This document shows, one piece after another, positions 1-22,930 of a DNA stretch of 64,000 bases. Location of the stretch: positions 13,640,001 through 13,704,000 of the forward strand of contig OZ059896.1 in assembly GCA_964057225.1 (NCBI GenBank), given 5' to 3'. The notes under the pieces are model-generated. The model did not search any database and had not been told where the DNA came from. It was given only the letters and a program-made list of their open reading frames with translations. Both the position numbers and the translations under genes were made by a program. This stretch comes from Auanema rhodensis (lineage: Eukaryota; Animalia; Nematoda). Within the stretch, counting starts at the first letter, position 1; every line of letters starts with the position of its first letter.

Positions 1-3000
1 CGGTCACATCGTGAGCACAGCCTGAACTTTTTTGTGAACAATCTTGTGGGTGTGCTTGGTATAAACCGTTTTTCCGGAAAATGGAGAGGTCCAAGCTAAA
101 TCTGAGTCGGATATTCAGATTCTTCATGTTTCATTACCCAAGTTCAGAATGTTTTTGTTTGAAAACATTTCATGATCGAAGAGAAAAACGGGGAATCACC
201 GGTCACATCGTGAGCACAGCCTGAACCTTTTTGTGAACAATCTTGTGGGTGTGCTTGGTATAAACCGTTTTTCCGGAAAACGGAGAGGTCTAAGCCTTTT
301 CTAAGTCGGATATTCAGATTCTTCATGTTTCATTACCCAAGTTCGGAATGTTTTTGTTCGAAAACATTTCATGATCGAAGAGTAAAACGGGGAATCACCG
401 GTCACATCGTGAACACAGCCTGAACCTTTTTGTGAACAATCTTGTGGGTGTGCTTGGTATAAACCGTTTTTCCGGAAAATGGAGAGGTCTAAGCCTTTTC
501 TAAGTCGGATATTCAGATTCTTCATGTTTCATTACCCAAGTTCAGAATGTTTTTGTTTGAAAACATTCCATGATCGAAGAGAAAAAAGGGGAATCACCGG
601 TCACATCGTGAGCACAGCCTGAACTTTTTTGTGAACAATCTTGTGGGTGTGCTTGGTATAAACCGTTTTTCCGGAAAATGGAGAGGTCTAAGCCTTTTCT
701 AAGTCGGATATTCAGATTCTTCATGTTTCATTACCCAAGTTCGGAATGTTTTTGTTTGAAAACATTTCATGATCGAAGAGAAAAACGGGGAATCACCGGT
801 CACATCGTGAACACAGCCTGAACCTTTTTGTGAACAATCTTGTGGGTGTGCTTGGTATAAACCGTTTTTCCGGAAAATGGAGAGGTCTAAGCCTTTTCTA
901 AGTCGGATATTCAGATTCTTCATGTTTCATTACCCAAGTTCAGAATGTTTTTGTTTGAAAACATTCCATGATCGAAGAGAAAAAAGGGGAATCACCGGTC
1001 ACATCGTGAGCACAGCCTGAACTTTTTTGTGAACAATCTTGTGGGTGTGCTTGGTATAAACCGTTTTTCCGGAAAATGGAGAGGTCTAAACCTTTTCTAA
1101 GTCGGATATTCTGATTCTTCATGTTTCATTACCCAAGTTCGGAATGTTTTTGTTTGAAAACATTTCATGATCGAAGAGAAAAACGGGGAATCACCGGTCA
1201 CATCGTGAACACAGCCTGAACCTTTTTGTGAACAATCTTGTGGGTGTGCTTGGTATAAACCGTTTTTCCGGAAAATGGAGAGGTCTAAGCCTTTTCTAAG
1301 TCGGATATTCAGATTCTTCATGTTTCATTACCCAAGTTCAGAATGTTTTTGTTCGAAAACATTCCATGATCGAAGAGAAAAAAGGGGAATCACCGGTCAC
1401 ATCGTGAGCACAGCCTGAACTTTTTTGTGAACAATCTTGTGGGTGTGCTTGGTATAAACCATTTTTCCGGAAAATGGAGAGGTCTAAGCCTTTTCTAAGT
1501 CTGATATTCAGATTCTTCATGTTTCATTACTCAAGTTCAGAATGTTTTTGTTTGAAAACATTCCATGATCGAAGAGAAAAAAGGGGAATCACCGGTCGCA
1601 TCGTGAACACAGCCTGAACTTTTTTGTGAACAATCTTGTGGGTGTGCCTGGTATAAACCCTTTTTCCGGAAAATGGAGAGGTCTAAGCCTTTTCTAAGTC
1701 GGATATTCAGATTCTTCATGTTTCATTACCCAAGTTCAGAATGTTTTTGTTTGAAAACATTTCATGATCGAAGAGAAAAACGGGGAATCACCGGTCACAT
1801 CATGAGCACAGCCTGAACTTTTTTGTGAACAATCTTGTGGGTGTGCTTGGTATAAACCGTTTTTCCGGAAAATGGAGAGGTCTAAGCCTTTTCTAAGTCG
1901 GATATTCAGATTCTTCATGTTTCATTACCGAAGTACAGAATGTTTTTGTTTGAAAACATTCCATGATCGAAGAGAAAAACGGGGAATCACCGGTCACATC
2001 GTGAGCACAGCCTGAACTTTTTTGTGAACAATCTTGTGGGTGTGCTTGGTATAAACCGTTTTTCCGGAAAATGGAGAGGTCCAAGCTAAATCTGAGTCGG
2101 ATATTCAGATTCTTCATGTTTCATTACCCAAGTTCGGAATGTTTTTGTTTGAAAACATTTCATGATCGAAGAGAAAAACGGGGAATCACCGGTCACATCG
2201 TGAGCACAGCCTGAACTTTTTTGTGAACAATCTTGTGGGTGTGCCTGGTATAAACCGTTTTTCCGGAAAATGGAGAGGTCCAAGCTAAATCTGAGTTGGA
2301 TATTCAGATTCTTCATGTTTCAATACCCAAGTTCAGAATGTTTTTGTTTGAAAATATTCCATGATCGAAGAGAAAAACGGGGAATCACCGGTCACATCGT
2401 GAGCACAGCCTGAACTTTTTTGTGAACAATCTTGTGGGTGTGCTTGGTATAAACCGTTTTTCCGGAAAATGGAGAGGTCCAAGCTAAATCTGAGTTGGAT
2501 ATTCAGATTCTTCATGTTTCAATACCCAAGTTCAGAATGTTTTTGTTTGAAAACATTCCATGATCGAAGAGAAAAACGGGGAATCACCGGTCACATCGTG
2601 AGCACAGCCTGAACTTTTTTGTGAACAATCTTGTGGGTGTGCTTGGTATAAACCGTTTTTCCGGAAAATGGAGAGGTCTAAGGCTTTTCTAAGTCGGATA
2701 TTCAGATTCTTCATGTTTCATTACCCAAGTTCAGAATGTTTTTGTTTGAAAACATTCCATGATCGAAGAGAAAAACGGGGAATCACCGGTAACATCGTGA
2801 GCACAGCCTGAACTTTTTTGTGAACAATCTTGTGGGTGTGCCTGGTATAAACCTTTTTCCGGAAAATGGAGAGGTCCAAGCTAAATCTGAGTTGGATATT
2901 CAGATTCTTCATGTTTCAATACCCAAGTTCAGAATGTTTTTGTTTGAAAACATTCCATGATCGAAGAGAAAAACGGGGAATCACCGGTCACATCGTGAGC

Positions 3001-6000
3001 ACAGCCTGAACTTTTTTGTGAACAATCTTGTGGGTGTGCTTGGTATAAACCGTTTTTCCGGAAAATGGAGAGGTCCAAGCTAAATCTGAGTTGGATATTC
3101 AGATTCTTCATGTTTCAATACCCAAGTTCAGAATGTTTTTGTTTGAAAACATTCCATGATCGAAGAGAAAAACGGGGAATCACCGGTCACATCGTGAGCA
3201 CAGCCTGAACTTTTTTGTGAACAATCTTGTGGGTGTGCTTGGTATAAACCGTTTTTCCGGAAAATGGAGAGGTCCAAGCTAAATCTGAGTTGGATATTCA
3301 GATTCTTCATGTTTCAATACCCAAGTTCAGAATGTTTTTGTTTGAAAGCATTTCATGATCGAAGAGAAAAACGGGGAATCACCGGTCACATCGTGAACAC
3401 AGCCTGAACTTTTTTGTGAACAATCTTGTGGGTGTGCTTGGTGTAAACCGTTTTTCCGGAAAATGGAGAGGTCTAAGCCTTTTCTAAGTCGGATATTCAG
3501 ATTCTTCATGTTTCATTACCCAAGTTCAGAATGTTTTTGTTTGAAAACATTCCATGATCGAAGAGAAAAACGGGGAATCACCGGTCACATCGTGAGCACA
3601 GCCTGAACTTTTTTGTGAACAATCTTGTGGGTGTGCCTGGTATAAACCGTTTTTCCGGAAAATGGAGAGGTCCAAGCTAAATCTGAGTTGGATATTCAGA
3701 TTCTTCATGTTTCAATACCCAAGTTCAGAATGTTTTTGTTTGAAAATATTCCATGATCGAAGAGAAAAACGGGGAATCACCGGTCACATCGTGAGCACAG
3801 CCTGAACTTTTTTGTGAACAATCTTGTGGGTGTGCTTGGTATAAACCGTTTTTCCGGAAAATGGAGAGGTCCAAGCTAAATCTGAGTTGGATATTCAGAT
3901 TCTTCATGTTTCAATACCCAAGTTCAGAATGTTTTTGTTTGAAAACATTCCATGATCGAAGAGAAAAACGGGGAATCACCGGTCACATCGTGAGCACAGC
4001 CTGAACTTTTTTGTGAACAATCTTGTGGGTGTGCTTGGTATAAACCGTTTTTCCGGAAAATGGAGAGGTCTAAGGCTTTTCTAAGTCGGATATTCAGATT
4101 CTTCATGTTTCATTACCCAAGTTCAGAATGTTTTTGTTTGAAAACATTCCATGATCGAAGAGAAAAACGGGGAATCACCGGTAACATCGTGAGCACAGCC
4201 TGAACTTTTTTGTGAACAATCTTGTGGGTGTGCCTGGTATAAACCTTTTTCCGGAAAATGGAGAGGTCCAAGCTAAATCTGAGTTGGATATTCAGATTCT
4301 TCATGTTTCAATACCCAAGTTCAGAATGTTTTTGTTTGAAAACATTCCATGATCGAAGAGAAAAACGGGGAATCACCGGTCACATCGTGAGCACAGCCTG
4401 AACTTTTTTGTGAACAATCTTGTGGGTGTGCTTGGTATAAACCGTTTTTCCGGAAAATGGAGAGGTCCAAGCTAAATCTGAGTTGGATATTCAGATTCTT
4501 CATGTTTCAATACCCAAGTTCAGAATGTTTTTGTTTGAAAACATTCCATGATCGAAGAGAAAAACGGGGAATCACCGGTCACATCGTGAGCACAGCCTGA
4601 ACTTTTTTGTGAACAATCTTGTGGGTGTGCTTGGTATAAACCGTTTTTCCGGAAAATGGAGAGGTCCAAGCTAAATCTGAGTTGGATATTCAGATTCTTC
4701 ATGTTTCAATACCCAAGTTCAGAATGTTTTTGTTTGAAAGCATTTCATGATCGAAGAGAAAAACGGGGAATCACCGGTCACATCGTGAACACAGCCTGAA
4801 CTTTTTTGTGAACAATCTTGTGGGTGTGCTTGGTGTAAACCGTTTTTCCGGAAAATGGAGAGGTCTAAGCCTTTTCTAAGTCGGATATTCAGATTCTTCA
4901 TGTTTCATTACCCAAGTTCAGAATGTTTTTGTTTGAAAACATTCCATGATCGAAGAGAAAAACGGGGAATCACCGGTCACATCGTGAGCACAGCCTGAAC
5001 TTTTTTGTGAACAATCTTGTGGGTGTGCTTGGTATAAACCGTTTTTCCGGAAAATGGAGAGGTCCAAGCCTTTTCTAAGTCTGATATTCAGATTCTTCAT
5101 GTTTCATTACCCAAGTTCAGAATGTTTTTGTTTGAAAATATTCCATGATCGAAGAGAAAAACGGGGAATCACCGGTCACATCGTGAGCACAGCCTGAACT
5201 TTTTTGTGAACAATCTTGTGGGTGTGCTTGGTATAAACCGTTTTTCCGGAAAATGGAGAGGTCCAAGCTAAATCTGAGTTGGATATTCAGATTCTTCATG
5301 TTTCAATACCCAAGTTCAGAAAGTTTTTGTTTGAAAACATTCCATGATCGAAGAGAAAAACGGGGAATCACCGGTCACATCGTGAGCACAGCCTGAACTT
5401 TTTTGTGAACAATCTTGTGGGTGTGCTTGGTATAAACCGTTTTTCCGGAAAATGGAGAGGTCCAAGCTAAATCTGAGTTGGATATTCAGATTCTTCATGT
5501 TTCAATACCCAAGTTCAGAATGTTTTTGTTTGAAAATATTCCATGATCGAAGAGAAAAACGGGGAATCACCGGTCACATCGTGAGCACAGCCTGAACTTT
5601 TTTGTGAACAATCTTGTGGGTGTGCTTGGTATAAACCGTTTTTCCGGAAAATGAAGAGGTCCAAGCTAAATCTGAGTTGGATATTCAGATTCTTCATGTT
5701 TCAATACCCAAGTTCAGAAAGTTTTTGTTTGAAAACATTCCATGATCGAAGAGAAAAACGGGGAATCACCGGTCACATCGTGAGCACAGCCTGAACTTTT
5801 TTGTGAACAATCTTGTGGGTGTGCTTGGTATAAACCGTTTTTCCGGAAAATGGAGAGGTCCAAGCTAAATCTGAGTTGGATATTCAGATTCTTCATGTTT
5901 CAATACCCAAGTTCAGAAAGTTTTTGTTTGAAAACATTCCATGATCGAAGAGAAAAACGGGGAATCACCGGTCACATCGTGAGCACAGCCTGAACTTTTT

Positions 6001-7344
6001 TGTGAACAATCTTGTGGGTGTGCTTGGTATAAACCGTTTTTCCGGAAAATGGAGAGGTCCAAGCTAAATCTGAGTTGGATATTCAGATTCTCCATGTTTC
6101 AATACCCAAGTTCAGAAAGTTTTTGTTTGAAAACATTCCATGATCGAAGAGAAAAACGGGGAATCACCGGTCACATCGTGAGCACAGCCTGAACTTTTTT
6201 GTGAACAATCTTGTGGGTGTGCTTGGTATAAACCGTTTTTTCGGAAAATGGAGAGGTCTAAGCCTTTTCTAAGTCGGATATTCTGATTCTTCATGTTTCA
6301 TTACCCAAGTTCAGAATGTTTTTGTTTGAAAACATTCCATGATCGAAGAGAAAAACGGGGAATCACCGGTCACATCGTGAGCACAGCCTGAACTTTTTTG
6401 TGAACAATCTTGTGGGTGTGCTTGGTATAAACCGTTTTTCCGGAAAATGGAGAGGTCCAAGCTAAATCTGAGTTGGATATTCAGATTCTTCATGTTTCAA
6501 TACCCAAGTTCAGAATGTTTTTGTTTGAAAACATTCCATGATCGAAGAGAAAAACGGGGAATCACCGGTCACATCGTGAGCACAGCCTGAACTTTTTTGT
6601 GAACAATCTTGTGGGTGTGCTTGGTATAAACCGTTTTTCCGGAAAATGGAGAGGTCCAAGCTAAATCTGAGTTGGATATTCAGATTCTTCATGTTTCAAT
6701 ACCCAAGTTCAGAATGTTTTTGTTTGAAAACATTCCATGATCGAAGAGAAAAACGGGGAATCACCGGTCATATCGTGAGCACAGCCTGAACTTTTTTGTG
6801 AACAATCTTGTGGGTGTGCTTGGTATAAACCGTTTTTCCGGAAAATGGAGAGGTCCAAGCTAAATCTGAGTTGGATATTCAGATTCTTCATGTTTCAATA
6901 CCCAAGTTCAGAATGTTTTTGTTTGAAAACATTCCATGATCGAAGAGAAAAACGGGGAATCACCGGTCACATCGTAAGCACAGCCTGAACTTTTTTGTGA
7001 ACAATCTTGTGGGTGTGCTTGGTATAAACCGTTTTTCCGGAAAATGGAGAGGTCCAAGCTAAATCTGAGTTGGATATTCAGATTCTTCATGTTTCAATAC
7101 CCAAGTTCAGAATGTTTTTGTTTGAAAACATTTCATGATCGAGGAGAAAAACGAGGAATCACCGGTCACATCGTGAACACAGCCTGAACTTTTTTGTGAA
7201 CAATCTTGTTGGTGTGCTTGGTATAAACCCTTTTTCCGGAAAATGGAGAGGTCGAAGCCAAGTCGGATATTCAGATTCTTCATGTTTCAATACCCAAGTT
7301 CAGAATATTTTTTTTTCAAAACATTTCATGATCGAGGAGAAAAA
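1..7344. repeat. 199-bp tandem satellite, left part (~37 monomers; continues beyond the window start)
   Basis: Near-identical 199-bp units, matching the 199-bp period of the ORF track. Two main variants: GGTCTAAGCCTTTTCTAAGTCGG and GGTCCAAGCTAAATCTGAGTTGG. Confidence 0.99.
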
Positions 7345-7540
7345 TAGAATTTTTTTACTATAATAAGACGTAAAAATGAGATTATATTTATTCGACTGTT
7401 AGCTATATTGTTTACATTGACCTCACGTTACAAAAAAAAAATTTTTTTTGAATAGGGTAATAAGACCGTGGGAAAGGCGGGCTTTAAGTATTGGCGGGAA
7501 CCGGGTTCTCAAGTCAATTCTATCAGTAAAACACTTCATA
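7345..7540 (-). repeat. DIRS 3' inverted terminal repeat (7,382-7,540) plus unique 3' extension (7,345-7,381)
   Basis: Inverted copy of 11,623-11,781. The extra 37 bp has no counterpart at the other end, like the rE extension of DIRS-1. Confidence 0.93.
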
Positions 7541-7726
7541 ATTTCTAAAAAGTTAAAGGGGATACAAAACGATACTGACAGAGAGATCTTCGGATAGGGA
7601 TGAGCAGGATCTATCTTCGTGGAACTGGGTTCTTCGAGGGGCGTCGGAATCTAAAGAAAAACGTAATCTAGAGAGCGCGAGGAAGGGACTCCGTAGGTGG
7701 AGACCAAGGGGTGGAAGGTGGGACTC

Positions 7727-7804
7727 CAGTCGAATAAATATAATCTCTTTTTTACGTCTTATTATAGTAAAAAAATTCTATTATATTTATTCGACTGTTA
7801 GCTA
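7727..7804 (-). other. DIRS internal complementary region (ICR)
   Basis: 7,727-7,780 is the reverse complement of 7,345-7,398, and 7,781-7,804 is the reverse complement of 11,758-11,781 (one mismatch each). It overlaps the YR stop codon at 7,798-7,800. Confidence 0.93.
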
Positions 7805-8742
7805 GTTAAAGAAAATAAGGAGTCCTGGAAAGAGCGTCTCTTGCAATAGTGTTTGAAGAAGGTGCTTTCCGAGGCCCAGTTAGCTGCGTCTAAAATAGTT
7901 TTGACAGGCAGTCCATTCTCAAAAGCTTTGGACGTAGCGGCAGCACGTACTGAGTGAGCTTTGAATTTTGTGGGGATTCCCGCTTCTTCTAGGCAAGTTC
8001 TAATCCAACCCGCTACCGTAGTTGCGACTACTGGTTCTCCTCTGTTAATGCTAACTAGAAGGTTTCGCGATCGACGAGTATGCATGGTAGCCGACAGGTA
8101 GGCATTTATGCAATCAATGGGGCAGACAAGAGGGCGTTCTGAATGGCTTTCGAAACAAGCTTCGCGGGGAGGGCCCTTGCCCCTATTCTTGTTCCTGAAT
8201 TCGATGAAGAAGGTGACCCCTCGTGTGTCAAAGCGCATGTGGTCGAGTGATAGCACCGATAGTTCCGATGCTCGTTGAGGGGAGCACATAGCTAAGAGGG
8301 TAGCAAGCTTGCGGGTTAGACAGTCTAAGGACAGCGAATCGTTAGGACCTAGACTTTCTAGGTGAGCCAAGACCGTAGAAGGGTCCCAGATATCCATGTA
8401 TCTAGCGTGTGGAGGCTTGGAACGATATATCCCGCGGAGAAGCTTTTTTAACATCGGATCGTCCCGGAGTGGGGGAGTTACGGAATAGTGTTCAGCGAGA
8501 GGGCAGAGAGCCGCCCTTGCTGTAGCAGCTGAGGAAAAACCGTTGTTCTCTGCCCGATGGGCTAAGAAATTGGCAACATTTTTTGCATTGGGGATGAACT
8601 CGATCTGGGATAGCTTGCAATAATTCTCCCAAGCTCTGTAAGCCGTGTTATATTGTTTTCGGGTACCAGGAGCGAAAGCGTTTACCAATAGTAGTTTGGT
8701 CTGGTCCGATATTCCTTCTATGTTGGCGGTGAAATCCTCCAC
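7798..8742 (-). CDS. DIRS tyrosine recombinase (integrase)
   Basis: N-terminal core-binding segment (APGTRKQY..AW..YC) and catalytic residues R (QRASE), H-x-x-R (HSVR), W (ANW) and Y (FFKHY). Overlaps the pol end and has no in-frame ATG at its start. Confidence 0.95.
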   Translation of the reverse strand: MEDFTANIEGISDQTKLLLVNAFAPGTRKQYNTAYRAWENYCKLSQIEFIPNAKNVANFLAHRAENNGFSSAATARAALCPLAEHYSVTPPLRDDPMLKKLLRGIYRSKPPHARYMDIWDPSTVLAHLESLGPNDSLSLDCLTRKLATLLAMCSPQRASELSVLSLDHMRFDTRGVTFFIEFRNKNRGKGPPREACFESHSERPLVCPIDCINAYLSATMHTRRSRNLLVSINRGEPVVATTVAGWIRTCLEEAGIPTKFKAHSVRAAATSKAFENGLPVKTILDAANWASESTFFKHYCKRRSFQDSLFSLTS

Positions 8743-11371
8743 GCCGCCAGGAAAAATTTCTTGTCCCCAGGAGGGGGTGAGAGTTGCCTTTCTTGTCTTG
8801 GAGAAGGCTGGGATGATGGAGGCTCATTGGGGGTTCCTGGACTAGTTGGGACAGAAGGGGAAACCAGATCTGGCTTTTCCAAAGTGGAGCGATCAGGATG
8901 GCCTGTCGTCCTGAGTCTGCCAACTTGTTGATGGTCCTCTTGAGGAGGTGGAAGGGCGGGAAGACGAAGAGAAGTCCTTGCGGCAGCAGTTTCCAGTTGT
9001 GAGAGAAGGCGTCTACGCAGAATGCGTTCTCGTCTAGAAGGAAAGAGCAGTAAAGTGGTGCCTTTGCGTTCCAGGAGGATGCAAAAAGATCAAATGAAGG
9101 GGTACCGAATCTTTGGAAAATACTCGCAGTCGTCTCCGGATGGAGGGACCAATCTTCGTGAAGGCATCTACCCCTGGAGAGTTGGTCTGCGATGTGATTC
9201 AGTCTGCCGGCGATGTGCGTTGCTCTGACTCGGATATTGCGCTCCCTGCAGAAGTGCCAGAGCTTACGGGCTATTTCCGAACCTCGTTCTGAGGCCGAGC
9301 CACCCCGCCTGTTGATGTAAGTTATCGCCGATGTGTTATCGATTAACAGTAACACGTCAATATTGCACCACTCAGTGCCGAAATGGACCAGGGCTTTGAA
9401 GGCCGCAATAAGTTCCAACCAGTTTATGTGATAAGCATATTTCTCCTTGATTGACCATTTCCCTGAGATAGTGTTGCCTTCCCATGATGCTCCATATCCT
9501 TCACCGGAGGCGTCCGATGTAATGGACAGGGATGGAGAGAAGGGTACAAGTGAACTCGGGGAGCCTAGTGTGCAAGATTCTTCTGATAGGAAGGCACGTA
9601 AGGTATCCCGAAGGTCTCCTACAATAGAGACCTGAGCGGAAAGCTCGTTGGGGTCGTTTAGGTTGGGAAAACCTATGCCTCGTAAATCTCTTTGAGTTTG
9701 TCTAACCCAAAAGGAAAAATGTGGGTGTACCACAGTGGCGAAGTTGATTCTCCCGAGGAGGGAGGCCAGTTTCCGGAGTGGGGAGGCCTGGGATCTGAGA
9801 AGGACCGACAGGGAGGTGCTTATAGCCTCCCGTTTCTCTGTTGGCAGGCGCCATTCAAGAGAGCGCGTGTCTATTTCTAAACCTAGAAAATCGAGCGATT
9901 GGGTAGGGCTTAAGATGGATTTAAGCATGTTAATAGAGAAACCCGCGTCACGGAATAGATCTATAGCACGAGACGCATGATCGGCCACTCTTGTGGCTGA
10001 CCTGTCTAGAAAAAGCCAGTCGTCAAGGTAGTTGATTAGGCGAATTCCCTGATCCCTGAGGAGCGCTGCAAGCACCCTCATCAGCTTATGAAACACGTAT
10101 GGGGCTGCGTTTAGGCCGAAAGGAAGGACGCAGAACACGTATGATCTGCCCTCTATATCAAAGCCCAGGTAGGGTTGATGTTCTATTGCCACAGGGATAG
10201 AATGATAGGCCGACTGGAAGTCCACCTTGCATAACCAATCATTGCGTTGCAACACCGATGGGAGGTCCCTAACGGATTCCAGCTTGAACCGGGGTGTCTC
10301 TATGAAGGTGTTAAGCGTCTTCAAGTTGAGGATAAAGCGGCTGGACCCATCGGACTTGGGTACTAGAAAAGTAGAGGACCGGAAGATCCTTTCGCCAGGT
10401 CTAGCCGGTCTGATTGCCCCCGTCTCCAAAAGCTCCGCAAGGAGAGGGTTAGCCGGAAGGGATTGCGGTAACGATGTCAGATTTGACAGAAGGCGCTTAG
10501 GTTTACTCCCTGCGAAAGGGAGGCGGTAGCCTTTTACCGTCTGAAGGATATCCTGGTCTTTAGAGAAGGAACCCCAAAAGTCTAGGTGGGACGAAAGAGC
10601 ACCTGCTCGAAAATGGACGCACCTGCTATAGGAGTTAGCCTTGTGGATGGGTCGTGTTGATGGTCCCGATCGTTGGTTCGATGACGGTCTTGGACGTTGA
10701 TGATCTCGGGAACTTGAATTGGTTCTTGAGTTTCTAGAGAGTTCAGAGAAAGCCGAGATTTCTGCCCTTAGCTTCTTTCCGAAGAGTTCCGGGACTGAGT
10801 CCTGAGAATAAAGATTAATAGACGTTGGTCGCTTATGGCATCCTACCTCCTGAGAGTTGTCGAGAGACATGGTAGAACCGTAGAGCGGGGCCCTTTTGTA
10901 GCTAGGCATAGCCTTGATGGGCTGAGAGTACTTCATTTTAAGAAGTGCGATCTCTCTGAGGTGAGTATAATCCGTCTTGATATTGGCGCTGAGGAATCTT
11001 TCTGTCACGTTGATGTATGCCTGTTGTTTGGAGGAAAGTGGAGACTTGTTATCGATCTTCGCAAGTTTCCTGATGATCCGTAGGCCGGCGAGCGCATTGA
11101 GCGTGTTCTCGTAAGAGGCCCTGATGTCAGCCTCGCTGATCTTCACTGATGGCTTGACTGAGCTATCCACGTGGGTGGTGTATTTCTCATCCAGGCATGG
11201 TAGACGGGCGAATGGAGAATCGAGTATTGGGAGCTCAGATAAGATGTCGGCTCTTTCGGTGTGCGTCATGGAGCAACCGGAGGCAAGACGCTCGAAGTCG
11301 GCAAGTTCGGAACCGGAGAGGCGGACTACAGGCCTGGTTCTAGGTCCTTGAGATTCTGGTGGCATGGGCAC
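8648..11371 (-). CDS. DIRS Gag-like + reverse transcriptase + RNase H + DNA N6-adenine-methyltransferase-like polyprotein
   Basis: RT: DFQSAYHSI, LPFGL, YLDD. RNase H: SDASGEGYG, HINWLEL, IDNTSA, NHIADQLSR. MT: DLFAS...DAFS..W...FPPF. The N-terminal ~250 aa are Gag-like by position. True start and C-terminus are uncertain (see findings). Confidence 0.95.
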   Translation of the reverse strand: MPMPPESQGPRTRPVVRLSGSELADFERLASGCSMTHTERADILSELPILDSPFARLPCLDEKYTTHVDSSVKPSVKISEADIRASYENTLNALAGLRIIRKLAKIDNKSPLSSKQQAYINVTERFLSANIKTDYTHLREIALLKMKYSQPIKAMPSYKRAPLYGSTMSLDNSQEVGCHKRPTSINLYSQDSVPELFGKKLRAEISAFSELSRNSRTNSSSRDHQRPRPSSNQRSGPSTRPIHKANSYSRCVHFRAGALSSHLDFWGSFSKDQDILQTVKGYRLPFAGSKPKRLLSNLTSLPQSLPANPLLAELLETGAIRPARPGERIFRSSTFLVPKSDGSSRFILNLKTLNTFIETPRFKLESVRDLPSVLQRNDWLCKVDFQSAYHSIPVAIEHQPYLGFDIEGRSYVFCVLPFGLNAAPYVFHKLMRVLAALLRDQGIRLINYLDDWLFLDRSATRVADHASRAIDLFRDAGFSINMLKSILSPTQSLDFLGLEIDTRSLEWRLPTEKREAISTSLSVLLRSQASPLRKLASLLGRINFATVVHPHFSFWVRQTQRDLRGIGFPNLNDPNELSAQVSIVGDLRDTLRAFLSEESCTLGSPSSLVPFSPSLSITSDASGEGYGASWEGNTISGKWSIKEKYAYHINWLELIAAFKALVHFGTEWCNIDVLLLIDNTSAITYINRRGGSASERGSEIARKLWHFCRERNIRVRATHIAGRLNHIADQLSRGRCLHEDWSLHPETTASIFQRFGTPSFDLFASSWNAKAPLYCSFLLDENAFCVDAFSHNWKLLPQGLLFVFPPFHLLKRTINKLADSGRQAILIAPLWKSQIWFPLLSQLVQEPPMSLHHPSLLQDKKGNSHPLLGTRNFSWRRGGFHRQHRRNIGPDQTTIGKRFRSWYPKTI

Positions 11372-11622
11372 GAAGTCGTCCTCGTCCGAGGAGTCATGTC
11401 GAACTTAATCGAGTTCTTCATGGGAGTTTACCGAGTGATCGCCTTGGGTTGATTCCGTAGGTGTGAGACGGCCATCGCGTCGTGAAGATTCCAAAGAGCC
11501 GTCTGATGAGATCGAGACGGATGAGCGGCCTCTTTTCGGGGCAGGCTCATGATCAGGGGCTTGTCCCTTCTTGGTAGTGCGAGCGGGGCCATAGCGACCA
11601 ACCGTGAGGCTCGAAACAAAAA

Positions 11623-11781
11623 TATGAAGTGTTTTACTGATAGAATTGACTTGAGAACCCGGTTCCCGCCAATACTTAAAGCCCGCCTTTCCCACGGTCT
11701 TATTACCCTATTCAAAAAAAATTTTTTTTTTGTAACGTGAGGTCAATGTAAACAATATAGCTAACAGTCGAAAAAATATAA
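11623..11781 (-). repeat. DIRS 5' inverted terminal repeat (159 bp)
   Basis: Reverse complement of 7,382-7,540 with one mismatch seen by eye. Confidence 0.95.
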
Positions 11782-14700
11782 CGAGGAATCACCGGTCACA
11801 TCGTGAACACAGCCTGAACTTTTTTGTGAACAATCTTGTGGGTGTGCTTGGTATAAACCGTTTTTCCGGAAAATGGAGAGGTCCAAGCTAAATCTGAGTT
11901 GGATATTCAGATTCTTCATGTTTCAATACCCAAGTTCAGAATGTTTTTGTTTGAAAACATTCCATGATCGAAGAGAAAAACGGGGAATCACCGGTCACAT
12001 CGTGAGCACAGCCTGAACTTTTTTGTGAACAATCTTGTGGGTGTGCTTGGTATAAACCGTTTTTCCGGAAAATGGAGAGGTCTAAGCCTTTTCTAAGTCG
12101 GATATTCAGATTCTTCATGTTTCATTACCCAAGTTCAGAATGTTTTTGTTTGAAAACATTCCATGATCGAAGAGAAAAACGGGGAATCACCGGTCACATC
12201 GTGAGCACAGCCTGAACTTTTTTGTGAACAATCTTGTGGGTGTGCTTGGTATAAACCGTTTTTCCGGAAAATGGAGAGGTCCAAGCTAAATCTGAGTTGG
12301 ATATTCAGATTCTTCATGTTTCAATACCCAAGTTCAGAATGTTTTTGTTTGAAAACATTCCATGATCGAAGAGAAAAACGGGGAATCACCGGTCATATCG
12401 TGAGCACAGCCTGAACTTTTTTGTGAACAATCTTGTGGGTGTGCTTGGTATAAACCGTTTTTCCGGAAAATGGAGAGGTCCAAGCTAAATCTGAGTTGGA
12501 TATTCAGATTCTTCATGTTTCAATACCCAAGTTCAGAATGTTTTTGTTTGAAAACATTCCATGATCGAAGAGAAAAACGGGGAATCACCGGTCACATCGT
12601 AAGCACAGCCTGAACTTTTTTGTGAACAATCTTGTGGGTGTGCTTGGTATAAACCGTTTTTCCGGAAAATGGAGAGGTCCAAGCTAAATCTGAGTTGGAT
12701 ATTCAGATTCTTCATGTTTCAATACCCAAGTTCAGAATGTTTTTGTTTGAAAACATTCCATGATCGAAGAGAAAAACGGGGAATCACCGGTCACATCGTG
12801 AGCACAGCCTGAACTTTTTTGTGAACAATCTTGTGGGTGTGCTTGGTATAAACCGTTTTTCCGGAAAATGGAGAGGTCTAAGCCTTTTCTAAGTCGGATA
12901 TTCAGATTCTTCATGTTTCATTACCCAAGTTCAGAATGTTTTTGTTTGAAAACATTCCATGATCGAAGAGAAAAACGGGGAATCACCGGTCACATCGTGA
13001 GCACAGCCTGAACTTTTTTGTGAACAATCTTGTGGGTGTGCTTGGTATAAACCGTTTTTCCGGAAAATGGAGAGGTCCAAGCTAAATCTGAGTTGGATAT
13101 TCAGATTCTTCATGTTTCAATACCCAAGTTCAGAATGTTTTTGTTTGAAAACATTCCATGATCGAAGAGAAAAACGGGGAATCACCGGTCACATCGTGAG
13201 CACAGCCTGAACTTTTTTGTGAACAATCTTGTGGGTGTGCTTGGTATAAACCGTTTTTCCGGAAAATGGAGAGGTCCAAGCTAAATCTGAGTTGGATATT
13301 CAGATTCTTCATGTTTCAATACCCAAGTTCAGAAAGTTTTTGTTTGAGAACATTCCATGATCGAAGAGAAAAACGGGGAATCACCGGTCACATCGTGAGC
13401 ACAGCCTGAACTTTTTGTGAACAATCTTGTGGGTGTGCTTGGTATAAACCGTTTTTCCGGAAAATGGAGAGGTCTAAGCCTTTTCTAAGTCTGATATTCA
13501 GATTCTTCATGTTTCATTACCCAAGTTCGGAATGTTTTTGTTTGAAAGCATTTCATGATCGAAGAGAAAAACGGGGAATCACCGGTCACATCGTGAACAC
13601 AGCCTGAACTTTTTTGTGAACAATCTTGTGGGTGTGCTTGGTATAAACCGTTTTTCCGGAAAATGGAGAGGTCTAAGCCTTTTCTAAGTCTGATATTCAG
13701 ATTCTTCATGTTTCATTACCGAAGTACAGAATGTTTTTGTTTGAAAACATTCAATGATCGAAGAGAAAAACGGGGAATCACCGGTCACATCGTGAGCACA
13801 GCCTGAACTTTTTGTGAACAATCTTGTGGGTGTGCTTGGTATAAACCGTTTTTCCGGAAAATGGAGAGGTCCAAGCTAAATCTGAGTTGGATATTCAGAT
13901 TCTTCATGTTTCATTACTCAAGTTCAGAATGTTTTTGTTTGAAAACATTCCATGATCGAAGAGAAAAACGGGGAATCACCGGTCACATCGTGAGCACAGC
14001 CTGAACTTTTTGTGAACAATCTTGTGGGTGTGCTTGGTATAAACCGTTTTTCCGGAAAATGGAGAGGTCCAAGCTAAATCTGAGTTGGATATTCAGATTC
14101 TTCATGTTTCAATACCCAAGTTCAGAAAGTTTTTGTTTGAAAACATTCCATGATCGAAGAGAAAAACGGGGAATCACCGGTCACATCGTGAGCACAGCCT
14201 GAACTTTTTTGTGAACAATCTTGTGGGTGTGCTTGGTATAAACCGTTTTTCCGGAAAATGGAGAGGTCCAAGCTAAATCTGAGTTGGATATTCAGATTCT
14301 TCATGTTTCAATACCCAAGTTCAGAATGTTTTCACTTGAAAACATTCCATGATCGGAGAGAAAAACGGGGAATCACCGGTCACATCGTGAGCACAGCCTG
14401 AACTTTTTTGTGAACAATCTTGTGGGTGTGCTTGGTATAAACCGTTTTTCCGGAAAATGGAGAGGTCCAAGCTAAATCTGAGTTGGATATTCAGATTCTT
14501 CATGTTTCGATACCCAAGTTCAGAAAGTTTTTGTTTGAAAACATTCCATGATCGAAGAGAAAAACGGGGAATCACCGGTCACATCGTGAGCACAGCCTGA
14601 ACTTTTTTGTGAACAATCTTGTGGGTGTGCTTGGTATAAACCGTTTTTCCGGAAAATGGAGAGGTCCAAGCTAAATCTGAGTTGGATATTCAGATTCTTC

Positions 14701-17700
14701 ATGTTTCAATACCCAAGTTCAGAAAGTTTTTGTTTGAAAACATTCCATGATCGAAGAGAAAAACGGGGAATCACCGGTAACATCGTGAGCACAGCCTGAA
14801 CTTTTTTGTGAACAATCTTGTGGGTGTGCTTGGTATAAACCGTTTTTCCGGAAAATAGAGAGGTCCAAGCTAAATATGAGTTGGATATTCAGATTCTTCA
14901 TGTTTCAATACCCAAGTTCAGAATGTTTTCATTTGAAAACATTCCATGATCGAAGAGAAAAACGGGGAATCACCGGTCACATCGTGAGCACAGCCTGAAA
15001 TTTTTTGTGAACAATCTTGTGGGTGTGCTTGGTATAAACCGTTTTTCCGGAAAATGGAGAGGTCCAAGCTAAATCTGAGTTGGATATTCAGATTCTTCAT
15101 GTTTCGATACCCAAGTTCAGAAAGTTTTTGTTTGAAAACATTCCATGATCGAAGAGAAAAACGGGGAATCACCGGTCACATCGTGAGCACAGCCTGAACT
15201 TTTTTGTGAACAATCTTGTGGGTGTGCTTGGTATAAACCGTTTTTCCGGAAAATGGAGAGGTCCAAGCTAAATCTGAGTTGGATATTCAGATTCTTCATG
15301 TTTCAATACCCAAGTTCAGAAAGTTTTTGTTTGAAAACATTCCATGATCGAAGAGAAAAACGGGGAATCACCGGTAACATCGTGAGCACAGCCTGAACTT
15401 TTTTGTGAACAATCTTGTGGGTGTGCTTGGTATAAACCGTTTTTCCGGAAAATAGAGAGGTCCAAGCTAAATATGAGTTGGATATTCAGATTCTTCATGT
15501 TTCAATACCCAAGTTCAGAATGTTTTCATTTGAAAACATTCCATGATCGAAGAGAAAAACGGGGAATCACCGGTCACATCGTGAGCACAGCCTGAACTTT
15601 TTTGTGAACAATCTTGTGGGTGTGCTTGGTATAAACCGTTTTTCCGGAAAATGGAGAGGTCTAAGCCTTTTCTAAGTCTGATATTCAGATTCTTCATGTT
15701 TCATTACCCAAGTTCGGAATGTTTTTGTTTGAAAGCATTTCATGATCGAAGAGAAAAACGGGGAATCACCGGTCACATCGTGAACACAGCCTGAACTTTT
15801 TTGTGAACAATCTTGTGGGTGTGCTTGGTATAAACCGTTTTTCCGGAAAATGGAGAGGTCCAAGCTAAATCTGAGTTGGATATTCAGATTCTTCATGTTT
15901 CATTACCCAAGTTCAGAATGTTTTTGTTTGAAAACATTCCATGATCGAAGAGAAAAACGGGGAATCACCGGTCACATCGTGAGCACAGCCTGAACTTTTT
16001 TGTGAACAATCTTGTGGGTGTGCTTGGTATAAACCGTTTTTCCGGAAAATGGAGAGGTCTAAGCCTTTTCTAAGTCTGATATTCAGATTCTTCATGTTTC
16101 ATTACCCAAGTTCGGAATGTTTTTGTTTGAAAGCATTTCATGATCGAAGAGAAAAACGGGGAATCACCGGTCACATCGTGAACACAGCCTGAACTTTTTT
16201 GTGAACAATCTTGTGGGTGTGCTTGGTATAAACCGTTTTTCCGGAAAATGGAGAGGTCTAAGCCTTTTCTAAGTCGGATATTCAGATTCTTCATGTTTCA
16301 TTACCCAAGTTCAGAATGTTTTTGTTTGAAAACATTCCATGATCGAAGAGAAAAACGGGGAATCACCGGTCACATCGTGAGCACAGCCTGAACTTTTTTG
16401 TGAACAATCTTGTGGGTGTGCTTGGTATAAACCGTTTTTCCGGAAAATGGAGAGGTCCAAGCTAAATCTGAGTTGGATATTCAGATTCTTCATGTTTCAA
16501 TACCCAAGTTCAGAATGTTTTTGTTTGAAAACATTCCATGATCGAAGAGAAAAACGGGGAATCACCGGTCACATCGTGAGCACAGCCTGAACTTTTTTGT
16601 GAACAATCTTGTGGGTGTGCTTGGTATAAACCGTTTTTCCGGAAAATGGAGAGGTCCAAGCTAAATCTGAGTTGGATATTCAGATTCTTCATGTTTCAAT
16701 ACCCAAGTTCAGAAAGTTTTTGTTTGAGAACATTCCATGATCGAAGAGAAAAACGGGGAATCACCGGTCACATCGTGAGCACAGCCTGAACTTTTTGTGA
16801 ACAATCTTGTGGGTGTGCTTGGTATAAACCGTTTTTCCGGAAAATGGAGAGGTCTAAGCCTTTTCTAAGTCTGATATTCAGATTCTTCATGTTTCATTAC
16901 CCAAGTTCGGAATGTTTTTGTTTGAAAGCATTTCATGATCGAAGAGAAAAACGGGGAATCACCGGTCACATCGTGAACACAGCCTGAACTTTTTTGTGAA
17001 CAATCTTGTGGGTGTGCTTGGTATAAACCGTTTTTCCGGAAAATGGAGAGGTCTAAGCCTTTTCTAAGTCTGATATTCAGATTCTTCATGTTTCATTACC
17101 GAAGTACAGAATGTTTTTGTTTGAAAACATTCAATGATCGAAGAGAAAAACGGGGAATCACCGGTCACATCGTGAGCACAGCCTGAACTTTTTGTGAACA
17201 ATCTTGTGGGTGTGCTTGGTATAAACCGTTTTTCCGGAAAATGGAGAGGTCCAAGCTAAATCTGAGTTGGATATTCAGATTCTTCATGTTTCATTACTCA
17301 AGTTCAGAATGTTTTTGTTTGAAAACATTCCATGATCGAAGAGAAAAACGGGGAATCACCGGTCACATCGTGAGCACAGCCTGAACTTTTTGTGAACAAT
17401 CTTGTGGGTGTGCTTGGTATAAACCGTTTTTCCGGAAAATGGAGAGGTCCAAGCTAAATCTGAGTTGGATATTCAGATTCTTCATGTTTCAATACCCAAG
17501 TTCAGAAAGTTTTTGTTTGAAAACATTCCATGATCGAAGAGAAAAACGGGGAATCACCGGTCACATCGTGAGCACAGCCTGAACTTTTTTGTGAACAATC
17601 TTGTGGGTGTGCTTGGTATAAACCGTTTTTCCGGAAAATGGAGAGGTCCAAGCTAAATCTGAGTTGGATATTCAGATTCTTCATGTTTCAATACCCAAGT

Positions 17701-20700
17701 TCAGAATGTTTTCACTTGAAAACATTCCATGATCGAAGAGAAAAACGGGGAATCACCGGTCACATCGTGAGCACAGCCTGAACTTTTTGTGAACAATCTT
17801 GTGGGTGTGCTTGGTATAAACCGTTTTTCCGGAAAATGGAGAGGTCCAAGCTAAATCTGAGTTGGATATTCAGATTCTTCATGTTTCAATACCCAAGTTC
17901 AGAAAGTTTTTGTTTGAAAACATTCCATGATCGAAGAGAAAAACGGGGAATCACCGGTCACATCGTGAGCACAGCCTGAACTTTTTTGTGAACAATCTTG
18001 TGGGTGTGCTTGGTATAAACCGTTTTTCCGGAAAATGGAGAGGTCCAAGCTAAATCTGAGTTGGATATTCAGATTCTTCATGTTTCGATACCCAAGTTCA
18101 GAAAGTTTTTGTTTGAAAACATTCCATGATCGAAGAGAAAAACGGGGAATCACCGGTCACATCGTGAGCACAGCCTGAACTTTTTTGTGAACAATCTTGT
18201 GGGTGTGCTTGGTATAAACCGTTTTTCCGGAAAATGGAGAGGTCCAAGCTAAATCTGAGTTGGATATTCAGATTCTTCATGTTTCAATACCCAAGTTCAG
18301 AAAGTTTTTGTTTGAAAACATTCCATGATCGAAGAGAAAAACGGGGAATCACCGGTAACATCGTGAGCACAGCCTGAACTTTTTTGTGAACAATCTTGTG
18401 GGTGTGCTTGGTATAAACCGTTTTTCCGGAAAATGGAGAGGTCCAAGCTAAATCTGAGTTGGATATTCAGATTCTTCATGTTTCAATACCCAAGTTCAGA
18501 ATGTTTTCACTTGAAAACATTCCATGATCGAAGAGAAAAACGGGGAATCACCGGTCACATCGTGAGCACAGCCTGAACTTTTTGTGAACAATCTTGTGGG
18601 TGTGCTTGGTATAAACCGTTTTTCCGGAAAATGGAGAGGTCCAAGCTAAATCTGAGTTGGATATTCAGATTCTTCATGTTTCAATACCCAAGTTCAGAAA
18701 GTTTTTGTTTGAAAACATTCCATGATCGAAGAGAAAAACGGGGAATCACCGGTCACATCGTGAGCACAGCCTGAACTTTTTTGTGAACAATCTTGTGGGT
18801 GTGCTTGGTATAAACCGTTTTTCCGGAAAATGGAGAGGTCCAAGCTAAATCTGAGTTGGATATTCAGATTCTTCATGTTTCGATACCCAAGTTCAGAAAG
18901 TTTTTGTTTGAAAACATTCCATGATCGAAGAGAAAAACGGGGAATCACCGGTCACATCGTGAGCACAGCCTGAACTTTTTTGTGAACAATCTTGTGGGTG
19001 TGCTTGGTATAAACCGTTTTTCCGGAAAATGGAGAGGTCCAAGCTAAATCTGAGTTGGATATTCAGATTCTTCATGTTTCAATACCCAAGTTCAGAAAGT
19101 TTTTGTTTGAAAACATTCCATGATCGAAGAGAAAAACGGGGAATCACCGGTAACATCGTGAGCACAGCCTGAACTTTTTTGTGAACAATCTTGTGGGTGT
19201 GCTTGGTATAAACCGTTTTTCCGGAAAATAGAGAGGTCCAAGCTAAATATGAGTTGGATATTCAGATTCTTCATGTTTCAATACCCAAGTTCAGAATGTT
19301 TTCATTTGAAAACATTCCATGATCGAAGAGAAAAACGGGGAATCACCGGTCACATCGTGAGCACAGCCTGAACTTTTTTGTGAACAATCTTGTGGGTGTG
19401 CTTGGTATAAACCGTTTTTCCGGAAAATGGAGAGGTCTAAGCCTTTTCTAAGTCTGATATTCAGATTCTTCATGTTTCATTACCCAAGTTCGGAATGTTT
19501 TTGTTTGAAAGCATTTCATGATCGAAGAGAAAAACGGGGAATCACCGGTCACATCGTGAACACAGCCTGAACTTTTTTGTGAACAATCTTGTGGGTGTGC
19601 TTGGTATAAACCGTTTTTCCGGAAAATGGAGAGGTCCAAGCTAAATCTGAGTTGGATATTCAGATTCTTCATGTTTCATTACCCAAGTTCAGAATGTTTT
19701 TGTTTGAAAACATTCCATGATCGAAGAGAAAAACGGGGAATCACCGGTCACATCGTGAGCACAGCCTGAACTTTTTTGTGAACAATCTTGTGGGTGTGCT
19801 TGGTATAAACCGTTTTTCCGGAAAATGGAGAGGTCTAAGCCTTTTCTAAGTCTGATATTCAGATTCTTCATGTTTCATTACCCAAGTTCGGAATGTTTTT
19901 GTTTGAAAGCATTTCATGATCGAAGAGAAAAACGGGGAATCACCGGTCACATCGTGAACACAGCCTGAACTTTTTTGTGAACAATCTTGTGGGTGTGCTT
20001 GGTATAAACCGTTTTTCCGGAAAATGGAGAGGTCTAAGCCTTTTCTAAGTCGGATATTCAGATTCTTCATGTTTCATTACCCAAGTTCAGAATGTTTTTG
20101 TTTGAAAACATTCCATGATCGAAGAGAAAAACGGGGAATCACCGGTCACATCGTGAGCACAGCCTGAACTTTTTTGTGAACAATCTTGTGGGTGTGCTTG
20201 GTATAAACCGTTTTTCCGGAAAATGGAGAGGTCCAAGCTAAATCTGAGTTGGATATTCAGATTCTTCATGTTTTATTACTCAAGTTCAGAAAGTTTTTGT
20301 TTGAAAACATTCCATGATCGAAGAGAAAAACGGGGAATCACCGGTCACATCGTGAGCACAGCCTGAACTTTTTTGTGAACAATCTTGTGGGTGTGCTTGG
20401 TATAAACCGTTTTTCCGGAAAATAGAGAGGTCCAAGCTAAATCTGAGTTGGATATTCAGATTCTTCATGTTTCAATACCCAAGTTCAGAATATTTTTATT
20501 TCAAAACATTTCATGATCGAGGAGAAAAACAGGGAATCACCGGTCGCATCGTGAGCACAGCCTGAACTTTTTTGTGAACAATCTTGTGGGTGTGCTTGGT
20601 ATAAACCGTTTTTCCGGAAAATGGAGAGGTCGAAGCCTTTTCTAAGTCGGATATTCAGATTCTTCATGTTTCAATACCCAAGTTCAGAATATTTTTATTT

Positions 20701-22930
20701 CAAAACATTTCATGATCGAGGAGAAAAGCGCGGAATCACCGGTCACATCGTGAGCACAGCCTGAACTTTTTTGTGAACAATCTTGTGGGTGTGCTTGGTA
20801 TAAACCGTTTTTCCGGAAAATGGAGAGGTCCAAGCTAAATCTGAGTTGGATATTCAGATTCTTCATGTTTCAATACCCAAGTTCAGAATGTTTTTGTTTG
20901 AAAACATTCCATGATCGAAGAGAAAAACGGGGAATCAGCGGTCACATCGTGAGCACAGCCTGAACTTTTTTGTGAACAATCTTGTGGGTGTGCTTGGTAT
21001 AAACCGTTTTTCCGGAAAATGGAGAGGTCCAAGCTAAATCTGAGTTGGATATTCAGATTCTTCATGTTTCAATACCCAAGTTCAGAATATTTTTATTTCA
21101 AAACATTTCATGATCGAGGAGAAAAGCGCGGAATCACCGGTCACATCGTGAGCACAGCCTGAACTTTTTTGTGAACAATCTTGTGGGTGTGCTTGGTATA
21201 AACCGTTTTTCCGGAAAATGGAGAGGTCCAAGCTAAATCTGAGTTGGATATTCAGATTCTTCATGTTTCAATACCCAAGTTCAGAATGTTTTTGTTTGAA
21301 AACATTCCATGATCGAAGAGAAAAACGGGGAATCAGCGGTCACATCGTGAGCACAGCCTGAACTTTTTTGTGAACAATCTTGTGGGTGTGCTTGGTATAA
21401 ACCGTTTTTCCGGAAAATGGAGAGGTCCAAGCTAAATCTGAGTTGGATATTCAGATTCTTCATGTTTCAATACCCAAGTTCAGAATATTTTTATTTCAAA
21501 ACATTTCATGATCGAGGAGAAAAACAGGGAATCACCGGTCGCATCGTGAACACAGCCTGAACTTTTTTGTGAACAATCTTGTGGGTGTGCTTGGTATAAA
21601 CCGTTTTTCCGGAAATTGGAGAGGTCCAAGCTAAATCTGAGTTGGATATTCAGATTCTTCATGTTTCAATACCCAAGTTCAGAATGTTTTCATTTGAAAA
21701 CATTTCATGATCGAGGAGAAAAGCGGGGAATCACCGGTCACATCGTGAGCACAGCCTGAACTTTTTTGTGAACAATCTTGTGGGTGTGCTTGGTATAAAC
21801 CGTTTTTCCGGAAAATGGAGAGGTCCAAGCTAAATCTGAGTTGGATATTCAGATTCTTCATGTTTCAATACCCAAGTTCAGAATATTTTTATTTCAAAAC
21901 ATTTCATGATCGAGGAGAAAAACAGGGAATCACCGGTCGCATCGTGAACACAGCCTGAACTTTTTTGTGAACAATCTTGTGGGTGTGCTTGGTATAAACC
22001 GTTTTTCCGGAAATTGGAGAGGTCCAAGCTAAATCTGAGTTGGATATTCAGATTCTTCATGTTTCAATACCCAAGTTCAGAATGTTTTCATTTGAAAACA
22101 TTTCATGATCGAGGAGAAAAGCGGGGAATCACCGGTCACATCGTGAGCACAGCCTGAACTTTTTTGTGAACAATCTTGTGGGTGTGCTTGGTATAAACCG
22201 TTTTTCCGGAAATTGGAGAGGTCCAAGCTAAATCTGAGTTGGATATTCAGATTCTTCATGTTTCAATACCCAAGTTCAGAAAGTTTTTGTTTGAAAACAT
22301 TCCATGATCGAAGAGAAAAACGGGGAATCACCGGTCACATCGTGAGCACAGCCTGAACTTTTTTGTGAACAATCTTGTGGGTGTGCTTGGTATAAACCGT
22401 TTTTCCGGAAAATGGAGAGGTCCAAGCTAAATCTGAGTTGGATATTCAGATTCTTCATGTTTCAATACCCAAGTTCAGAATATTTTTATTTCAAAACATT
22501 TCATGATCGAGGAGAAAAACAGGGAATCACCGGTCGCATCGTGAACACAGCCTGAACTTTTTTGTGAACAATCTTGTGGGTGTGCTTGGTATAAACCGTT
22601 TTTCCGGAAATTGGAGAGGTCCAAGCTAAATCTGAGTTGGATATTCAGATTCTTCATGTTTCAATACCCAAGTTCAGAATATTTTTATTTCAAAACATTT
22701 CATGATCGAGGAGAAAAACAGGGAATCACCGGTCGCATCGTGAACACAGCCTGAACTTTTTTGTGAACAATCTTGTGGGTGTGCTTGGTATAAACCGTTT
22801 TTCCGGAAATTAGAGAGGTCCAAGCTAAATCTGAGTTGGATATTCAGATTCTTCATGTTTCAATACCCAAGTTCAGAATGTTTTCATTTGAAAACATTTC
22901 ATGATCGAGGAGAAAAGCGGGGAATCACCT
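11782..22930. repeat. 199-bp tandem satellite, right part (~56 monomers)
   Basis: Resumes in exact register (CGAGGAATCACCGGTC) after the insertion and ends at GAATCACC ~22,928. More divergent monomers occur from ~20,485 on. Confidence 0.99.

Follow-up and report, generated by a model that had tools for sequence, protein, structure and literature searches.

A DIRS1-type tyrosine-recombinase retrotransposon family in satellite DNA of the nematode Auanema rhodense

Architecture of the element and its sister families

The window analyzed here is a 64,000-nucleotide stretch of the Auanema rhodense genome (assembly GCA_964057225.1, contig OZ059896.1, positions 13,640,001 to 13,704,000 of the forward strand). 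Positions 7345-11781 of the window hold, on the minus strand, a 4,437-bp DIRS1-type tyrosine-recombinase (YR) retrotransposon that interrupts an array of 199-bp satellite repeats. This feature is very probably one copy of a young family of such elements in the A. rhodense germline genome, passively accumulated in satellites. An earlier reading of the window, made from the sequence only, had described inverted terminal repeats (ITRs), a 3' extension, an internal complementary region (ICR) and open reading frames (ORFs) for a reverse transcriptase, RNase H and methyltransferase (RT-RH-MT) protein and for a YR. All of these are present, as identified by inverted repeats and domain matches, at the following positions.

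1..22934, plus strand: host 199-bp satellite array, interrupted once by the element (TRF period 199, 114 copies)
11619..11781, minus strand: 5' ITR, element positions 1-163 (inverted repeat, 163 nt at 99% to the other arm)
11405..11592, minus strand: disrupted start of gag-pol (alignment of seven full-length copies, and translations)
8648..11365, minus strand: ORF of 905 codons left after this disruption, starting at the next in-frame ATG, with gag-like, RT, RNase H and methyltransferase regions (ORF list)
9872..10363, minus strand: reverse transcriptase (Pfam RVT_1, E 1.3e-19, residues 337-500 of the 907-aa ORF)
9164..9541, minus strand: RNase H, limits approximate (invariant D/E/D/D columns; structure match to RNase H1)
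8753..8760, minus strand: T-run with a 1-bp deletion (T6>T5) at about 8757 (alignment of seven full-length copies)
8720..9151, minus strand: N6-adenine methyltransferase-like domain, the "MT" of DIRS elements, limits approximate (Foldseek match to PCIF1/CAPAM; invariant motifs)
7798..8742, minus strand: YR ORF of 314 codons, its GTG start aligned to the ATG of sister families (Pfam Phage_integrase, E 4.4e-12)
7727..7804, minus strand: ICR, 78 nt (inverted repeats to both element ends)
7382..7544, minus strand: 3' ITR (inverted repeat partner of 11619-11781)
7345..7381, minus strand: 3' extension, 37 nt outside the ITR (recurs complemented in the ICR)

Read exactly, the two ITR arms comprise about 158 perfect bases and one mismatch, at element position 9, in agreement with the 159-bp ITRs with a single difference described earlier. 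The mismatch is private to the window copy in an alignment of seven full-length copies. The ICR is made of two overlapping parts, one of 56 nt (7727-7782) complementary to the 3' end of the element (7343-7398), the other of 24 nt (7781-7804) complementary to its 5' end (11758-11781). The ICR thus corresponds, in reverse complement, to a circle junction in which the 3' end is joined to the 5' end. Such a junction is what a circular or head-to-tail form of the element would carry, and its encoding is what defines the ICR of DIRS1-type elements. Long internal direct repeats, as in the split A1...B1A2...B2 plan, are absent from the element, whose sole direct pair, of 34 nt, arises from the recurrence of the ITR tip in the ICR.

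The element has a GC content of 49%. The satellite has 40% and the non-satellite DNA past 23.2 kb has 28%, so that the element is GC-richer than its host, as had been noted from the sequence. The insertion point lies about 41-44 bp from an SL1-like motif, a distance that includes the 44 bp first proposed. An Rfam scan of the window at gathering thresholds returned zero matches.

We searched the A. rhodense genome with the recombinase and the RT for further DIRS elements. This analysis revealed four families, beyond which the next RT matches are long terminal repeat (LTR) elements at 26-27% identity.

Family A (window element): 11 RT-bearing copies
Family A' (on C1): 1 copy, RT identity 74% to family A
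Family B (in a 351-bp satellite): about 12 copies, RT identity 50% to family A
Family C (in several satellites): about 8 copies, RT identity 48% to family A

Family A includes seven full-length copies (L001 to L007, L001 being the window copy) that differ by 0.25-0.9%, besides truncated copies. The three sister families have the same architecture wherever it is readable, and all are embedded in satellites; family A', for instance, has 160-nt ITRs and an ICR, like family A. GC content is 0.47-0.49 in families A, A' and B. Family C differs from family A by its lower GC content of 0.375, which is still above that of the host, and by the ATG start codon of its YR ORF.

Coding capacity and protein domains

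The sequence-only reading had called the element complete. This holds for its structure, but its coding sequence carries three lesions relative to four sibling copies. In these siblings (L003-L006), gag and pol form one uninterrupted ORF of 958 codons, which starts with an ATG at element position 190, 27 nt past the 5' ITR. In the window copy, the gag-pol ATG (11590-11592) is followed two codons on by a 1-bp deletion that reduces five C to four (C5>C4, at about 11585-11588), and a nonsense codon (CAA>TAA) stands at 11405-11407. The third lesion, the T6>T5 deletion, replaces the conserved C-terminus of pol (...LAAWRI) and places the pol stop 69 nt farther downstream and so away from the start of the recombinase. 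The two lesions at the gag-pol start are common to the window copy and one other copy, L002, only; the T6>T5 deletion is also found in both.

The region following the RT was aligned with 24 relatives, and an AlphaFold (AF2) model was built on that alignment (L003:3414-4562), with a pLDDT of 92.8. The D/E/D/D columns of RNase H and the DLFAS and FPPF motifs are invariant in this alignment. Compared with RNase H1 structures, the model gives TM scores of 0.5-0.69 depending on the target, and the fold also resembles the RT-RH of Ty3 and CaMV. The last domain of the model matches the cap-specific N6-adenosine methyltransferase PCIF1/CAPAM (Foldseek, E 4.7e-7). The Pfam match of this domain to Dam is sub-threshold (E 0.048), and its homologues carry PF05869. 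The best structural matches of the DIRS methyltransferase-like domain are therefore the eukaryotic PCIF1/CAPAM proteins and not bacterial Dam, and a weak Pfam PCIF1_WW match is found as well. A tie between DIRS methyltransferase domains and PCIF1 may be worth a look.

The catalytic residues of the YR (R157, K185, H263, R266, W289 and Y299) are kept in the alignment. Pfam scans of the element proteins gave no protease and no DDE integrase family. Likewise, the gag-like N-terminal 380 residues hold no CCHC zinc knuckle, with neither a C-x2-C-x4-H-x4-C pattern nor a Pfam zf-CCHC match.

The YR is encoded in the -1 frame relative to pol, with an overlap between the pol stop and the first conserved YR codon. 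The YR ORF starts with ATG in family C and in an outside contig described below (L031), and with GTG in families A and B. This arrangement would be compatible with translation of the YR by reinitiation or from a near-cognate start codon. A -1 ribosomal frameshift into the YR frame at A_AAT_TTT/T_TTT_TTC was considered as a general mechanism and dropped, because the site is unconserved in A', B, C and L031, whereas the start codon overlapping the pol stop is conserved. Families B and C and L031 have a conserved C-terminus of pol, HPLL...NFQLAAWR(I/V)-stop; in family A it reads FFLAAWRI, and the pol of A' ends earlier.

Relatives of the element

Relatives outside the A. rhodense genome were sought by a word-based search only, among 5.8 billion proteins. 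The best identity found for the RT-RH-MT protein is at most 36%, the named matches being from a sponge, a caecilian and an ant. The recombinase gave one outside match at 59%, on the 3.8-kb contig L031, which also shares the ICR hairpin motif. The motif in question, TTATAT(T/G)(T/A)ATTCGAC, is common to the termini and ICR of families A and A' and is found again in a hairpin after the recombinase gene of L031. It is probably the recognition sequence of the recombinase.

Repeat structure was read in three of the outside elements. An element from the sponge Sycon (L067) and one from a metagenome (L032) both have ITRs plus an ICR. An element from the strongylid nematode Cylicocyclus (L066) has split direct repeats A1...B1A2...B2, of 261 nt and 62 nt, and is thus of the PAT type; a search seeded with it recovered named strongylid relatives, some of which are annotated "zinc knuckle".

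A tree of 44 RT-RH-MT sequences was inferred with IQ-TREE (LG+G4) and rooted on Ty3-like sequences. Families B and C enter it without their first ~135 RT residues, and the Cylicocyclus row consists of two adjacent ORF pieces, joined with an X at the stop for the alignment only. Two clades were recovered. The first (100/98) contains the ITR-type elements along with the four A. rhodense families, which form a single 100/100 clade with L031, on a long stem and sister to the other DIRS1-like sequences. The second (100/99) contains the strongylid PAT-type elements and bivalve sequences.

A survey of 34 nematode genomes published in 2014 reported Dirs1-like elements only in Enoplia and Dorylaimia and considered them possibly absent from Rhabditida (PMC4157794). 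The same survey stressed that the repeat structure of YR elements is homoplasious and described a minor Dirs1-structured lineage among PAT elements. The A. rhodense lineage could, on that precedent, be a derived PAT-like nematode element that acquired inverted repeats by convergence, an explanation that we regard as very unlikely. The tree parts the A. rhodense families and the ITR-type elements from the strongylid PAT clade, and a tree constrained to unite A. rhodense with the nematode PAT elements, a grouping named after the first tree had been seen, is worse by 173.8 lnL units (p-AU 1e-50). In addition, the gag region lacks the CCHC zinc knuckle, and a PAT-type recombinase query found nothing in the A. 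rhodense genome closer than the DIRS families. The earlier proposal of a young DIRS1-type element in a rhabditid nematode is supported; by its ITR/ICR structure and in the RT-RH-MT tree, whose clade labels are structural proxies, the element falls among ITR/ICR elements rather than the PAT-like ones of nematodes. We found no later report of Dirs1-like elements in Rhabditina or of such elements tied to nematode DNA elimination, and the results fit a placement of family A in a DIRS1-like lineage so far unrecorded in Rhabditida.

With DIRS-1 of Dictyostelium discoideum and the animal Dirs1-like elements, the window element has in common its ITRs, its 3' extension and an ICR complementary to both termini, as well as a coding capacity for gag-like, RT, RNase H, methyltransferase-like and YR proteins, the absence of a target-site duplication (TSD) and residence in repeat-rich or heterochromatic DNA. 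The Dirs1-like elements of Sycon and of the metagenome have this repeat plan and belong to the same clade as the A. rhodense families. The window element differs from this group by the low identity of its pol to any outside protein found, by the fusion of gag and pol in one ORF with a GTG-initiated YR ORF overlapping the pol stop, and by its host, a rhabditid nematode, where the type was thought absent (PMC4157794). Pat1-like elements, such as Panagrellus PAT and the Cylicocyclus element, are likewise YR retrotransposons of the DIRS order in which RT-RH-MT precedes the YR, but they have split direct repeats and a Gag zinc knuckle, whereas the window element has ITRs and an ICR, lacks the zinc knuckle and falls in the other clade. 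Ngaro elements combine split direct repeats with the lack of a methyltransferase domain, in contrast to the ITRs and methyltransferase-like domain found here.

The contrast between the GC content of the element and the 28% of the neighboring unique DNA, together with the lack of other reports of DIRS1-like elements in Rhabditida (PMC4157794), could be explained if family A had recently been acquired horizontally, as the sequence-only reading had suggested. Against this scenario, the four A. rhodense families, as diverged from each other as the RT identities above indicate, form a single clade, and all are GC-richer than the host, three of them to a similar degree. Moreover, the best pol match outside the clade reaches 36% only, and the clade sits on its long stem with no close donor. 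A recent horizontal acquisition of family A is thus unsupported and, on the sequences compared, highly improbable.

The A. rhodense families extend the DIRS1-like (ITR/ICR) lineage to Rhabditida, an order for which the phylum-wide survey had judged it possibly absent (PMC4157794). Apart from this taxonomic extension, the element has a textbook DIRS1 architecture, and its novelty is a modest, taxonomic one.

Insertion sites and residence in satellite DNA

Insertion sites were reconstructed by joining 45 nt of 5' flank to 45 nt of 3' flank and comparing the product with nearby monomers. The joined flanks correspond to an intact neighboring monomer in all seven full-length copies, with no duplication and no loss; identity is 90/90 in five copies and 87/90 in the window copy and L002, and the window copy shows no gap at the junction. 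The lack of both TSD and loss is as expected of conservative recombination. The full-length copies are distributed as follows.

L001, L002: 199-bp satellite; identical junctions
L003: one 200-bp variant; a position of its own
L005, L006: a second 200-bp variant, at 78% to the 199-bp unit; each at a different position and in opposite orientations
L004: unrelated 351-bp satellite; first of two positions
L007 (and array-amplified derivatives L008-L011 and L016): unrelated 351-bp satellite; second position

In the standard DIRS1 cycle, RNA without the extreme ends of the element would be reverse-transcribed by its own RT and RNase H. The ICR, which is complementary to the joined 3' and 5' ends, would serve as a template or splint by which the termini are restored and joined, and the YR would then recombine the joined termini conservatively with chromosomal DNA; the absence of a TSD is observed. 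A study on Dictyostelium DIRS-1 describes the ICR as experimentally required for its retrotransposition (PMC7192593).

The identical junctions of L001 and L002 do not represent two insertions. A single substitution and a 20-bp tandem duplication are all that separates the two copies, and non-satellite DNA of the window (23022-23717) recurs inverted, at 98.4%, as the 5' flank of L002. Since all three coding lesions are common to both and the flank is copied in inverted orientation, L001 and L002 record one insertion. The window copy is thus duplicated with its flanks, 19 kb away, by an inverted segmental duplication. At the edge of the array (window 22935-23110), the satellite ends abruptly in a GC-rich minisatellite of 15-bp period that reads as Gly-X-Y (collagen-like) repeats. 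This edge and about 700 bp of unique DNA recur inverted about 19 kb upstream, beside the duplicate element (L002:609-678), and the region is thus a large inverted duplication.

Six independent sites remain. The base following the element is T in five of them; five begin with TT and three read TTTTT. As TT also represents the first two bases of the element, this microhomology leaves the exact crossover ambiguous within TT. Integration thus loosely prefers points immediately 5' of TT or a short T-run, and shows no preference for a particular satellite or monomer position. In a truncated copy on another chromosome (L015), the 5' junction lies at the homologous position of a diverged monomer, which hints at a mild site preference.

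These sites bear on the earlier suggestion that the element is specific for GAGAAAAA|CG in the 199-bp satellite, beside the SL1-like motif, much as NeSL elements are for SL1 genes. The GAGAAAAA|CG site is common to the window copy and L002, and the L015 junction is homologous to it; the first two, however, are a single insertion duplicated along with its flanks. The five other independent copies occupy different monomer positions, in one orientation or the other, or lie in the unrelated 351-bp satellite, and the site beside the SL1-like motif is not reused by any of them. NeSL-1, an SL1-gene-specific non-LTR element, belongs to a different class that uses a restriction-like endonuclease and target-primed reverse transcription, whereas the window element has a YR; the likeness comes down to one DIRS copy near an SL1-like motif. 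Single-site, SL1-related or NeSL-like targeting is refuted by these observations, and we give site specificity of this kind practically no credence.

Residence in satellites is nevertheless general. Every DIRS copy with a readable flank sits in a satellite array, at 6-7 sites for family A, one for A', at least four for B and at least six for C; the copies of family C are spread over five or more different satellites. The satellites met around DIRS copies have units of 167, 172-175, 199, 200, 342 and 351 bp. A 2026 preprint describes, for A. rhodense APS4, a germline-inclusive assembly of 180.9 Mb in seven chromosome scaffolds, with tandem-repeat units of 167-504 bp. According to this preprint, elimination removes about 61% of the genome from somatic cells, mainly in the form of multi-megabase tandem-repeat blocks, and genes derived from transposable elements (TEs) are generally concentrated in the eliminated DNA.

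Two explanations of this residence were weighed. The most economical, which we favor, is passive accumulation of elements where insertions cost nothing, rather than aimed insertion. Alternatively, DIRS elements might actively seek out satellite or heterochromatic DNA of the germline-restricted kind, their recombinase or Gag recognizing, for example, chromatin or a bound protein. The satellites would then be a chosen safe haven, a possibility that the sequence-only reading had raised for the 199-bp satellite. The all-satellite distribution of the four families is what such targeting would produce, and the weak sequence preference leaves the restriction unexplained, since T5 runs are nearly as common outside the satellite (12.5 per kb in adjacent non-satellite DNA against 19.3 per kb in satellite). 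DIRS-1 of Dictyostelium likewise clusters in heterochromatin (PMC7192593). However, eliminated repeat DNA makes up 61% of the genome, and it is there that TE-derived genes are generally concentrated; the retained genome is compact (60 Mb), and purifying selection in it would yield the same picture. Several of the "sites" are array-level duplications, so that their independence is overstated, and no targeting domain appears in Pfam scans. Active targeting is therefore possible but unlikely in our view.

Several points weigh against the interpretation of the window feature as a copy of a young DIRS1-type family passively accumulated in germline satellites. All of the about 17 independent DIRS sites are in satellite, for which a null of uniform insertion gives 0.61^17 = 2e-4; although the independence of the sites is uncertain, all-satellite residence exceeds this null, and some targeting is possible. 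The elimination of these particular arrays is taken from the general description in the preprint, just as the replication steps given for the A. rhodense element are inferred from those of Dictyostelium DIRS-1. The clades of the tree are labeled by the repeat structure of only four elements and by source names, as proxies for canonical references such as Dictyostelium DIRS-1, Panagrellus PAT and Ngaro. Finally, both 1-bp deletions of the window copy lie in homopolymers, where assembly error is conceivable, yet two separately assembled copies share them. Passive accumulation of a DIRS1-type family remains the explanation that we favor.

A bolder and rather doubtful proposal would combine these elements into an unrecorded DIRS1-like rhabditid clade exclusive to germline-restricted satellite DNA, which it would reach by active chromatin targeting and where its fragments would seed higher-order tandem repeats. 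If true, this would represent a retrotransposon lineage specialized on the eliminated genome of Auanema. Older assemblies, mostly somatic or based on short reads, could hide whole transposon lineages of germline-only satellite DNA. The young copies and exact empty sites described here provide a clean set, in a laboratory-tractable worm, for asking whether eliminated DNA acts as a passive refuge of mobile elements or as their aimed target.

Fragments of family A are also found within repeat units. At C3:4413146-4421949 (L008 and L009), a 5'-truncated copy (element 422-4437) and its 351-bp satellite flank are repeated in tandem with a period of 4,787 bp. At C3:4967960-4996508 (L018-L027), a 221-bp fragment (element 422-642) occurs at least ten times, about 1.5-1.8 kb apart, inside a 351-bp array. 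DIRS fragments are undergoing amplification as parts of higher-order satellite units.

Two further observations concern other sequences of the window and the genome. At window positions 53402-53430, GGCATTGCC, located in AT-rich DNA, resembles the GGC/GCC core of nematode elimination break motifs, with arms that are poorly palindromic (about 5-6 of 14). A guessed core of the break motif, GGCANTGCC, has 425 matches in the genome against 112 for a control pattern, which is too many for specificity. Finally, LTR-type RT matches, numbering more than 100 and having open frames of 2,000-3,100 codons, cluster in chromosome-central megabase intervals (for example C3:11.85-13.45 Mb, C7:9.3-11.3 Mb and C8:10.7-14.9 Mb), which suggests that large young Pao/BEL- or gypsy-like families are concentrated in the central blocks.

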